Of a DNA stretch of 64,000 nt, positions 42,287 to 49,033 are shown piece by piece (positions within the stretch are counted from its first letter, which is position 1; each line of letters opens with the position of its first letter). The notes beneath the pieces are model-generated. The model was not told the origin of the DNA, did no database searches, and saw only the letters and a program-made list of their open reading frames with translations. The stretch covers positions 31,434,001 to 31,498,000 of the forward strand of contig NC_088859.1 in NCBI RefSeq assembly GCF_963853765.1, read 5' to 3'. This DNA is from Magallana gigas. Its lineage: Eukaryota. A program made the translations under genes and the position numbers.

Positions 42287-45200
42287 TCATTCTTCAGTTG
42301 CAATAGCTTTCCTATTGTCAAATTTTGCCAGAAATGGTTCTGGGGTAGGGTCTCTTCCCATGAAAGTTCTAAACACAGTCTTAGGATCAACAGCGGCTCC
42401 CATTGTCAAGTAGGTGTCCTTGAAACTAAGCCAGAGAAGAAATACACAGTGTATTAAACAACAGACAGTTGTAAAGTTTGGATAAAGATATTTAATAAGT
42501 GTATAATCCTTTCTCAAACATGTACTTCATATGTAGGCATTTGACATTATAAACGTCTCTATTCATTTTTATAGTAGATATAATTACCTTACCTATATAA
42601 ACACATACAGAAGTATGAATTCATGAAAAGAGATAACATCAAAATGCAAATGATGTACATTTACATCTCTACAAAGAAGTTCATTTTCAAAGAGAATCTC
42701 TAATAGTTAAGGCCTTTACCGTTTTCCAACAAGAGCTAGTTTTTGTTCATCATGAAGAACCTCTTTGAAAGCGGAGGCTGCATCAGCTGCTACCATCTAC
42801 AAATATAAAAGTTGAGGCTTAAATTATTGATAAAAAGTTTTTTCTAGTTTTATATTTTTACACAAATAATTTGAGTTATTCTTCATGCATTAAAAATGTC
42901 TCCTTTTACCTTGCTCCAGATTTCTGCATAGTATAAACAGCTTCTCCCTCCTATGAAAATGTCGTGAAATGTACAAAATCTCTCGTCTTTTGGATGGAGA
43001 GGCATTGGGATGAACTCTTTATATAGCCTGTTGTATTGGTCAGGTGTGGACTCTGGCCTAAATGTTATAGTAAAGAAATATTGCAGTACCTGCCATTTTT
43101 AACTTGCTACATGAACACATACAGCAAAACTCGAATATAACGAACACGGATATAGCGAATTTACGGCTATAACGAATTATTATTCATGTCCCGGCAAATT
43201 TCTTATATAAACCTTTAGAAAATTAATGTATATAACGAACATGGCTATAACGAATTTACAGCTATAACGAAGTAATTTTAAGACCCCCGCTGGCAAAATC
43301 TTTACGTATTTTATCATTTTTATAACGAATTTTTTCCATTTCAAGATTCATTTAGAATACATGCAATGTTAGGATGTATATATAAAATACTCAAATTCAA
43401 ATAGTATACGGATTTTTTTTTTTAATTAAAATGAATTGTTTATATAGACATTTTTTTGTAAATGACGGTAATACTAATTTTATAACTTACGATAGTGTGG
43501 AAAACTGTAAGCGGATTATTTTATAACGAATTCGCTATAATATTTTAGACGAATTCGTTATAAACGTATAGCGAATTACGGCTAAAACGAAGTTTTTTCT
43601 ACGGTCCCTTGAAATTCGTTATAAACGAGTTTTGCTGTATTTTCATTTGAATATTCTGCAGTTCCTTTTGAACAATGTATATAACGTACCGGTACTTCAA
43701 GTTTTCATAAAGACCCAAAGAATGTGAAATTAATTATATGTACAAGAGATGTTTCTTCAATTTGATTACAAAATAATCATTAGGTTAACCTGGGCTTCAT
43801 ATCTTACTTACGTCTTAATAAATGTTCCTCTTGTTTCTCTGAATATGAAAAAATTAACATTGATACATTAACATACATGTACAACAAGAAAAATTGTGAA
43901 AAGGGCGACTTTTGCAACTTGGAAATAGAAGATAGTTCGTATTTGTAACATGAAAATACATTTACTCTATACCAAATATAAGTTAATAAAAGTGCAGAAA
44001 ATGTGTGAAAGAAAAAATAAAGGACTTACTCCAGGTAAAACTCTAGATCCAGGGCACTTTTAAAAGCTTCATTCAGAACATCAATTGCCTGCATGTGTTC
44101 TTGAGCTGAAAAGTATACAATACATAGGATATCCTCCATGTCAAAAATTCTGGTAGTCCATGTATAGATCATACATCATATTGACAAAGCTATTTTTCAT
44201 AAAGAAAAAATGACATGCTTTGCTTTATCAATAATTTGATAAAAATATGTTCTATACAACTGCTGACCTCCTATCATTGAATTCAACTGCTCGTCTGGGA
44301 TCTCAACACCTGACGAGTGGTGGCTGCTGAGGGATTTGAACACTTCTGGGATCTGAATCACATTTAGAAGTGTATATGGAACAATCTTCTGGGCATCTGG
44401 CTCCATGTGCCTGTTTCCAGACATCTCACTGTATGGAGCCCTGGACAGAATACACTGAAGGGCACATCCCATCTAGAGTTTACAAGAAAACATCAAATTT
44501 GATATGTTGTACATGTGTTTGGTCACTAAACTATCTGATACTGTCAACAAAAAGCTTGTTGAGGCATCTTTGATTTTTTTTAGACTATTCTATTGGATGA
44601 AATTCTATTCTCTTATACAAATATTTGATCATTTAATAATGAATGCACAAACAGTAGATACTGTAAAGTTATAAAATATTACCAGTATATCCAACTTACA
44701 TTCATGATAAAACTTTGAATATCATCAAACTGCATTACACTGGGCTTAGACTGATCATATGAAGGATTAATTCTCAGAGAAACATAGGTCAAGGGTGTGG
44801 TTTCAGCAACAGCACTTCTGTCTGAAAACATTGCAGGTACCTTTAAGATAACAACTGATTAAAAATTTGTTACATACATAAATGAAGGATAATTTGTCAA
44901 AGAAATATATACTATATACAGGGTTATTTTTGCCCCATGTAATTTTCATCCTTCTACACTTGCAAACAGTTTCACCCTGACTTGAATTCGCCCAGACACA
45001 GTTGTGTTTAAAAAGAGATAATAAGAAACATTAGAATCTGCCCAGTTTTAAATTTACCCCCTGACAAGGAGGGCGAAAGGAGTGAAAATAAAATGGGACG
45101 AATATTTCCCTCTATACAATAGCTAATTATGTTATACCATTTTTCATAGATTTACATAGATTTCGGGTGAATATCAGTTGGACATAATAAACAAAACATA

Positions 45201-48200: not shown

Positions 48201-49033
48201 AGTATCTTCCAGCTTTCCCTGAGCCTAGTTGTCTGCCTGTGTAAAGGCTGTAATACAGTGGCACACGGGCATTCTCCAGGGGATCTATCACAGATTCAAA
48301 TGTAGGTGGTTCTGTAGAGTCTGCAAACAACCAAACAAGAAAAGTAAATCACCTATCTCAATAAATTATCCATTTTTATTTTTGTTGGCAACAATTGGAA
48401 ATTCGCGTTACTGCCACAATGAGATATGCACCATTTTGTGCAAGATGTATGCATGCTGAAAATATTATCTCGAGATTGATGACCAAGTTCCATGTCAATT
48501 TGTAACGCTAGACTGTTTTATTCATTTTAATTAAGCCACATCTGCAATTTGATAGGATACAGGTGGGGTTTCATAACAGAATATTTTGTAAACTACCTTG
48601 CAGATGTTTTAAATGTTGAAGAAGTGCAACTTCATAGTCCTGTGAAAGTTTTGCTGTCCCAGTAATAACTTTGTCTGGTGGTATATTAAAATCAGGCATG
48701 TCATGGTAACGTAATAACGGGTTAGTTTCAGGTGTATCATCTGAGACATCTGGTAATCTAACAAGAAGAAAAAACCACGTGGAATATGGAAGACGAATTC
48801 AATGTTGACAATAAATATTTACATCAAGAGACAGACTCGAGGAAATTCAGATTGACCTACTTGTGTAACAGCAAAGAGCATTACGCAACCTTAACAGCAT
48901 GAACAGAAATGTTATTATTTTACCCATAGGAAACTTACAGAAGATGAAATCCTGACATTGTGTAGTTTATACACCGGCTTTGTATTTGTGTAACAGAAGG
49001 TAAAAACCTTCGTCCGTGCCGAGCAATCATCAT
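42287..49033 (-). CDS. Peptidase family M3A (oligopeptidase A-like) homolog, 726 aa, zinc site degenerate (probable pseudopeptidase)
   Basis: 19 phase-compatible exons: 48939-49033, 48597-48757, 48184-48320, 47916-47984, 47587-47744, 47132-47233, 46776-46964, 46430-46531, 45963-46091, 45743-45842, 45568-45631, 45276-45356, 44700-44821, 44268-44472, 44030-44105, 43812-43838 (27-nt microexon), 42910-43057, 42720-42796, 42287-42425. Family hallmarks: NPLL, LGFKSYVDL, LEHWDVEYY, YIDPYARDDK, FMGRDPTPEPFL. Confidence 0.88.
43122..43637. mobile_element. Tc1/mariner (pogo-like) MITE with TA target duplication
   Basis: TA-CAGCAAAACTCG...CGAGTTTTGCTG-TA, with many internal TATAACGAA sub-terminal repeats in both orientations. 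Confidence 0.85.
44919..45116. mobile_element. Short degenerate TA-flanked MITE
   Basis: TATACAGGGTTATTTTTGCCCC...GGGACGAATATTTCCCTCTATA imperfect inverted ends. Confidence 0.5.

Follow-up and report, generated by a model that had tools for sequence, protein, structure and literature searches.

Oligopeptidase A of bacteria (OpdA; MEROPS M03.004) and the two Arabidopsis enzymes OOP, also named TOP1 (structures 4KA7 and 4KA8), and CYOP, also named TOP2 (4PUT), are M3A peptidases that cleave peptides of 8–23 residues. All three keep the zinc-binding motif HEFGH, the Glu that serves as third zinc ligand and a flexible loop whose His and Tyr residues stabilise the transition state in M3A enzymes. 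Thimet oligopeptidase (THOP), neurolysin and MIPEP, the last two of which are mitochondrial, share the same Pfam family and fold class and belong to subfamilies different from that of the protein described here. This protein is encoded by a gene of the oyster Magallana gigas that occupies positions 49045-42287, on the minus strand, of a 64,000-nucleotide stretch of DNA (assembly GCF_963853765.1, contig NC_088859.1, positions 31,434,001 to 31,498,000; hereafter the window, whose numbering is used throughout). It is collinear over its full length with OOP, CYOP and OpdA, and in its animal family, as in OOP and OpdA, the mature domain opens with (D/E)T..(S/T)NPLL. In contrast to the three enzymes, the catalytic equivalents of the oyster protein are replaced, the Tyr609/610 equivalents being kept. 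A selected, non-catalytic role, as put forward in an original prediction made from the sequence alone, is the best reading of this locus, since the gene, despite the loss of the site, is transcribed, accurately spliced and under strong purifying selection. We infer, with reasonable though incomplete confidence, that the product is a selected, non-catalytic and probably mitochondrial pseudopeptidase.

The gene was placed among its relatives. Apart from a sister oyster described below, the matches to exon 14 were exon-sized fragments starting with FGHGLQQ, and a 453-residue fragment (P0013) gave access to some 70 full-length proteins of ~720 residues. These come from gastropods, bivalves, a chiton, cephalopods, annelids, a nemertean, Priapulus, Limulus, crustaceans and many insects, and the set includes no mussel, scallop, other oyster (pteriomorph) or deuterostome sequences. 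Most of them are named "probable cytosolic oligopeptidase A" or "oligopeptidase A" at NCBI. A profile built from bivalve relatives and nine of the exons of this gene (A3, which supersedes the weakly scoring profile A1 with its badly aligned exons) matched Arabidopsis OOP (4KA7/4KA8) with an E-value of 7e-133 and 448 bits, over residues 13-705 of 4KA7, and also matched CYOP (4PUT). Its scores were 246 bits for thimet oligopeptidase, 238 for Dcp and 231 for neurolysin, MIPEP being outside the comparison. The oyster model alone scored 444 bits with a Solemya protein, ~180 bits with bacterial OpdA-like proteins and ~73 bits with THOP-like proteins. Judged by these alignments, the oyster gene is a member of the OpdA/OOP lineage of M3A.

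Rebuilding the gene from the sequence, with scripted splicing of 42000-49300, gave 19 exons with GT..AG borders at every intron and a coding sequence of 2193 nt for 730 residues, with no internal stop and a terminal TGA at 42289-42287. The original prediction of 19 in-phase exons without stops thus stands, whereas its length of 726 residues does not: the reading frame extends a further 12 nt (four codons) upstream, to an ATG at 49045 that has A at -3, and the Met of the earlier model (49033) is then residue 5. The N-terminus of the 730-residue model reads MSASMMIAR and matches the family N-terminus MAASM(I/V)R. Pfam Peptidase_M3 (PF01432) is detected as one domain (E-value 1.4e-75), residues 266-720 aligning with profile positions 2-455 of 457, and by this full-length domain the protein is an M3 homologue.

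Transcription was examined in RNA data. The fraction of sampled words of the 6.8-kb gene that is present was ~0.22-0.24 in fourteen runs, which fits spliced RNA. Transcript contigs of three runs from three studies (X1, 2690 nt; X4, 2333 nt; X2, from organism B, two contigs) and raw reads of a polyA run (X21) were mapped on 42240-48239, a stretch outside which the exon 1/2 and 2/3 junctions lie. Fourteen of the 18 junctions were seen directly in RNA at the exact modelled borders, all of them CT..AC on the plus strand. Moreover, the X4 contig holds 101 nt between exons 5 and 7, matching the 102-nt exon 6 within a 1-nt slack at the exon-5 edge. Where polyA reads span joints, as they do at several, the first mate lies on the plus strand, the orientation that a stranded library gives for a transcript of the minus strand. 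The junction 44700|44472, on which the original reading of a split HExxH motif depended, is present in the X1 and X2 contigs at depths of 56.9 and 102.6.

The active site was examined by alignment with 74 relatives, by comparison of exon 17 with Arabidopsis OOP (4KA8) and by profile alignment to 4KA7. Where the reference reads LFHEFGHGLQ, the oyster protein reads FIMN|MGCALQ, the bar marking the junction; the first His, the Glu and the second His have therefore become M506, N507 and C510. The third zinc ligand of active enzymes, a Glu ~25-29 residues after HExxH, lies in WDAVE, which reads PDAQK in the oyster (EPDAQK), with Lys536 in the Glu column. Residues 595-642 of 4KA8, which span the catalytic loop, align with CTFHDIFIGGRSCLYYAEIW, and the equivalents of THOP1 His600, Tyr605 and Tyr612 are D642, R648 and E655 in this alignment as well as in the family columns. 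The replacements first read from the sequence as MNMGC, DAQK and a degenerate loop were thus recovered in the family alignments. Overall, other residues have taken the place of the three zinc ligands, of the general-base Glu and of three of the five His/Tyr residues in the loop, and the protein has none of the features of an active M3A peptidase, namely HExxH, the third-ligand Glu and the loop His/Tyr set. From these replacements, the oyster protein is predicted to be unable to bind the catalytic zinc or to polarise water. It should be noted that exon 17 alone gave a weak match against the PDB (E-value 0.08), and that exon 14 alone gave no match there.

Mutation of the first His alone ends cleavage in Arabidopsis TOP1 and TOP2 (PMC8215294), and 4KA7 itself is an engineered inactive OOP mutant (FHQFGH), to which the oyster protein is alike in a far more extreme form. 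Around the lost ligands, the helix scaffold is retained (G509, L512, Q513, Y521, E523, G526, E531, D533 and A534), which fits a kept pocket. A conserved Cys two residues past the lost third-ligand Glu was considered as a substitute ligand and dropped, as arthropods keep the Glu, many of them together with the Cys, and the oyster has Val at this position.

Exon 14 was searched against 1.84 billion representatives, which returned a 96%-identical exon (P0001) and four contigs (L029-L032) of a sister oyster, with ~90% nucleotide identity and spanning exons 14-18. Over the 177 codons of these exons, we found 15 synonymous and 4 non-synonymous differences, giving a non-synonymous rate (dN) of 0.0096, a synonymous rate (dS) of 0.149 and a dN/dS of 0.064, far from the value near 1 that the original prediction had named among the evidence against itself. 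Three introns diverge by 11.9% from those of the sister oyster, in which MGC, DAQK and the entire degenerate loop are identical. The exonic differences listed among the transcript contigs, from other individuals and organism B, are all synonymous (7/7). The low dN/dS and the synonymous variants indicate that the gene is not drifting. Given that it is transcribed, spliced and under strong purifying selection, the protein should have a sequence-dependent job other than peptide hydrolysis.

Moreover, the protein is not the "otherwise preserved" one that had been described. Conservation in 85% or more of the animal members defines 117 positions, of which it retains 76, compared with 95-114 in the other animal members examined. 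It is ~31% identical to other molluscs, against ~60% between Solemya and gastropods, and its terminal branch, at 1.37 versus a median of 0.33, is the longest in the family. It is thus the most divergent member, and its history is one of rapid change earlier and tight constraint now.

The concerted loss named in the original prediction finds no support as an event specific to this gene, since erosion is stepwise and family-wide. Of the 70 animal sequences sampled, Priapulus alone has the full canonical HExxH and Glu set, and the other 69, the oyster among them, lack part or all of it. The first His is kept in 13 of the 70 animal rows (a minimum of 11 state changes on the tree), the catalytic Glu in 21 (6 changes), the second His in 42 (14 changes) and the third-ligand Glu in 30 (11 changes), while the Tyr612 equivalent is kept in 9 of 69 rows (8 changes). 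Arthropods typically show x-(K/R)-x-x-H with the third Glu mostly kept; in lophotrochozoans, the third Glu is mostly replaced, usually by Gln or His, and some retain HEFGH. Examples are Daphnia, with AKxxH and Gln, and Littorina, with HEFGH and Gln. Bivalves are more eroded, as illustrated by HQFGH in Solemya and QLMGY in Sinanodonta, and further dead relatives are P0011 (WLFGA) and L034, whose motif reads FQM|FGR and whose third-ligand column holds Met. Dead copies of these kinds (WLFGA; FQM|FGR) were seen in the relatives L028, L033 and L034. The oyster, with none of the HExxH and third-Glu residues left, is the end point of this erosion. Orthologues such as those of Solemya velum, Sinanodonta woodiana, Aplysia, Daphnia, Danaus, Limulus and Priapulus have ~720 residues, a presequence-like N-terminus and, except in Priapulus, an incomplete site, and they share with the oyster an exon boundary inside HExxH, exon-level fragments beginning with FGH. 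Most orthologues, however, keep part of the site together with the greater number of conserved positions given above.

In a maximum likelihood tree of 75 rows, the gene tree mirrors the species tree and the oyster falls within a lophotrochozoan clade (support 99 in the Shimodaira-Hasegawa-like approximate likelihood ratio test, SH-aLRT). It groups with bivalve rows at 83-94, adjoining the dead fragment P0011, and its exact sister is uncertain given the long branch. Searching its own 564-Mb assembly with the family profile returned this gene, with exon 2 as the top match (E-value 1.6e-11), and then only weaker THOP-like and MIPEP-like exons; no second OpdA-like gene was found in this search. 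As the sole OpdA-like locus of its genome, the gene is a single orthologue and not a dead duplicate. The arrangement raised in the original prediction, a dead clade with an active paralogue beside it, finds no support in the oyster genome, where the intact M3 paralogues belong to the THOP/neurolysin-like and MIPEP-like subfamilies.

Two side observations concern the eroded relatives. In the arthropod rows (P0034-P0097), Lys or Arg stands almost without exception at the catalytic Glu position of HExxH, with the third-ligand Glu mostly kept; this is a conserved replacement and not random decay, and it hints that the former active site has gained a charged contact. L034 (positions 240-2340 of a Logan contig of SRR25749194) is a compact, short-intron copy of the dead gene with FQM|FGR, DAEM and a loop ending in ...GCMQYADIW, in whose exon 14 a segment of ~28 residues appears to be duplicated.

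The N-terminus provides the clue to location. Matrix presequences are basic, acid-free and amphipathic, with an Arg close to the site of cleavage, and the oyster N-terminus was judged against these features. Its residues 1-38 contain 4 Arg, 1 His and no Asp or Glu, so that the Arg-rich, acid-free character noted at the outset was confirmed, and the window IARHGRRFLPS has a helical hydrophobic moment of 0.81, a value that 51 of 2000 shuffles attained. In nearly every full-length animal member, a stretch of 27-44 residues comes before YYVL; it includes 4-9 Arg/Lys and, as a rule, neither Asp nor Glu, and a conserved Arg stands a few residues ahead of the YYVL.PE.P.DTPE.NPLL block at which OpdA homology starts. 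This basic, acid-free extension is common to the animal family and absent from bacterial homologues, and it renders the proposed mitochondrial location plausible. The plant relative OOP is organellar and carries an N-terminal organelle-targeting peptide (PMC8215294); because of this and of the presequence features, a location in the mitochondrial matrix is likely for the oyster protein.

We therefore picture the protein as follows, with each step to be read as conditional. The single oyster orthologue of a protostome-wide OpdA/OOP branch would form a full-length, catalytically inert two-domain clamshell of the OOP type. Its Arg-rich, acid-free N-terminus of ~25 residues would act as a matrix-targeting presequence, so that the protein would work in mitochondria, like plant OOP. 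There it may act by binding instead of cutting, with short peptides or a partner protein held in the old substrate cleft. The binding of peptides or presequences and the scaffold function suggested in the original prediction would be conceivable roles. Catalysis would probably be dispensable, as the intact neurolysin/THOP-like and MIPEP-like matrix peptidases could take over peptide clearance. The concept has parallels among metallo-pseudopeptidases, which include alpha-MPP and the core proteins of complex III (M16), inactive ADAMs (M12) and CPXM/AEBP1 (M14) (PMC11266112). In these M12, M14 and M16 proteins, too, the fold is kept for binding or as a scaffold after loss of the metal site, some of them being mitochondrial, but the families are unrelated to M3. 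Neither M3 nor thimet, neurolysin or oligopeptidase is named anywhere in this 2024 review. MEROPS holds a catch-all entry "Subfamily M3A non-peptidase homologues", M03.UNA (PMC4826915), and our literature search found no study of the animal oligopeptidase A family or of an M3 pseudoenzyme.

Several points weigh against this picture. The mitochondrial claim rests on composition, on the hydrophobic-moment test (51/2000 shuffles) and on family conservation, and the database name "probable cytosolic oligopeptidase A" of the relatives points away from mitochondria, although, being transferred from Arabidopsis CYOP, it does not count as evidence. Retention of the cleft is presumed from the full-length profile matches. 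The dN/dS covers exons 14-18, a quarter of the coding sequence, in one species pair. Finally, the fast oyster lineage could reflect past relaxed constraint instead of a new function.

Starting with location, a protein that is non-catalytic and selected might nevertheless reside in the cytosol or elsewhere, for example in a peptide-binding or regulatory capacity, its N-terminal extension having another role. Besides the NCBI name, the detection of full-length Arabidopsis TOP1 in the cytosol as well (PMC8215294) speaks for this. We regard it as rather unlikely, since the presequence-type extension, with 4-9 basic and almost no acidic residues and the conserved Arg before YYVL, recurs in nearly all full-length animal members and is missing in bacteria, and since the "cytosolic" label was transferred by similarity only.

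The protein could also still be an enzyme, through a non-canonical metal site or another chemistry involving, for instance, Cys510 or a nearby His. A Cys indeed replaces the second His, in the sister oyster as well, and a dN/dS of 0.064 fits any function. However, residual activity based on Cys510 is unlikely because the position varies in the nearest dead relatives, being Ala in P0011 and Arg in L033 and L034; moreover, the oyster has lost the four canonical residues together with the equivalent of the transition-state Tyr, and the family column table contains no alternative conserved cluster of His, Cys, Asp or Glu. Taken together, we consider an active enzyme very unlikely.

Equally, the longest terminal branch of the family and the loss of 41 of its 117 conserved positions are what a functionless relic might show, one that is still expressed and heading for a pseudogene. 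This is highly improbable in view of the 730-codon reading frame that remains intact over 19 exons, a 27-nt micro-exon included, of the low dN/dS set against 11.9% intron divergence, with 15 synonymous versus 4 non-synonymous differences and only synonymous transcript variants (7/7), and of the spliced transcripts found in several studies. As for an alternative exon or isoform that restores HExxH and leaves the dead form as one product among others, the RNA evidence consists of assembled contigs and ~1% of one raw-read run, from which rare isoforms could escape, but the chance is negligible: no H[ED]xxH occurs in any reading frame of the minus (coding) strand in 42000-49300, so that no hidden exon could restore the motif, every contig joins 44700 straight to 44472, and the third ligand and the loop residues are lost in other exons too.

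Returning to the inert, probably mitochondrial protein, its family allows a broader proposal, which we advance tentatively and with slightly less than even confidence. The protostome OpdA/OOP-like orthogroup may be an old, presequence-bearing family of mitochondrial pseudopeptidases, in which arthropods and lophotrochozoans lost catalysis independently through different residues and Priapulus is perhaps still active, and which a binding role in the handling of mitochondrial peptides or presequences may have preserved over hundreds of millions of years, the oyster gene being its most stripped-down member. Peptide cleavage is probably absent from the widely annotated animal "oligopeptidase A" group as a whole, and the enzyme label carried across mollusc, annelid, crustacean and insect genomes would be corrected. 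With the nearly intact Priapulus protein at one end and the fully dead oyster protein at the other, the family also forms a natural series in which one can ask what a clamshell of the OOP type does without catalysis. The mitochondrial location, if true, would draw attention to a player in the peptide or presequence handling of protostome mitochondria that has gone unstudied.

The exons, all on the minus strand, are arranged as follows. Exon 1 (48939..49045) holds the coding sequence from the ATG at 49045, with the presequence-like N-terminus MSASMMIARHGRRFLPSVTQIQSRC as residues 1-25 (49045-48971), and lies outside the RNA-mapped stretch. Exon 2 (48597..48757), with AG/GT borders, carries the conserved LPDVSDDTPETNPLLR motif that marks the start of bacterial OpdA homology, and aligns to the family columns. 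Exon 3 (48184..48320) also has AG/GT borders, and its junction 48184|47984 is seen in X1, X2, X4 and three polyA reads. Exon 4 (47916..47984; AG/GT) has both flanking junctions in RNA, and exon 5 (47587..47744), reached through the RNA junction 47916|47744, corresponds to positions 470-628 of the X4 contig. Exon 6 (47132..47233; AG/GT; 102 nt) has its joints from the X4 contig arithmetic. The Pfam Peptidase_M3 match starts in exon 7 (46776..46964), and exon 8 (46430..46531) again has both flanking junctions in RNA. Model borders and RNA define exons 9 (45963..46091), 10 (45743..45842), 11 (45568..45631) and 12 (45276..45356).

The lost site is distributed over the following exons. Exon 13 (44700..44821) ends with ...SFIMN, where Met506 and Asn507 (44705-44700) replace the His-Glu of HExxH. 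Exon 14 (44268..44472) starts with MGC, its Cys510 (44466-44464) replacing the second His, and contains DAQK at 44397-44386, with Lys536 in place of the third-ligand Glu. Model borders, RNA and the sister-species alignment define exons 15 (44030..44105) and 18 (42720..42796), and between them exon 16 (43812..43838) is the 27-nt micro-exon, with both junctions in RNA and conserved in the sister species. Exon 17 (42910..43057) encodes the degenerate catalytic loop FHDIFIGGRSCLYYAEIW (42969-42916), with D642, R648 and E655. Exon 19 (42287..42425) retains the FRxFxGRDP motif and ends with the stop TGA. At plus-strand base 44472, the first base of exon 14, the X4 contig has G, which would turn Met508, at an "x" position of the old HExxH, into Leu; this is possibly a polymorphism, and it restores none of the lost site residues.

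The intact M3 paralogues of other subfamilies lie elsewhere in the same assembly. A tandem cluster at 4.74-4.89 Mb of contig C7 (HEFGHVMHQICAQSEF), spanning 4738513-4889822 (matches L001-L004, L006-L016 and L020-L026), comprises four THOP/neurolysin-like copies, and in three of them the HEFGHVMHQ exon is intact. The copy at 4.74 Mb gave no match to a HExxH exon, and one of its matching exons contains four stops; this copy may be decayed. A MIPEP-like gene lies at 32.24 Mb of contig C8 (32239329-32299633; L005, L017-L019 and L027), and further matches to the profile segment 375-413 at 41 kb and 54 kb downstream suggest extra partial or duplicated copies.

Two introns contain repeats. Intron 12 holds a high-copy repeat (44840-45100), with a summed contig depth of ~2700 compared to ~57 for the exons, many variant positions, and loose ends of reads at 44910, 44981 and 45022. 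The other repeat, in intron 16 (43119-43640), is a 522-bp element resembling a miniature inverted-repeat transposable element, with terminal inverted repeats of 26 nt (43119-43144 and 43615-43640) and internal TATAACGAA repeats. This intron measures 754 nt here and 150 nt in the sister oyster, so that ~600 bp have no counterpart there. The very high RNA depth of the element, with loose ends exactly at 43119 and 43640, indicates that many copies of it are transcribed elsewhere.

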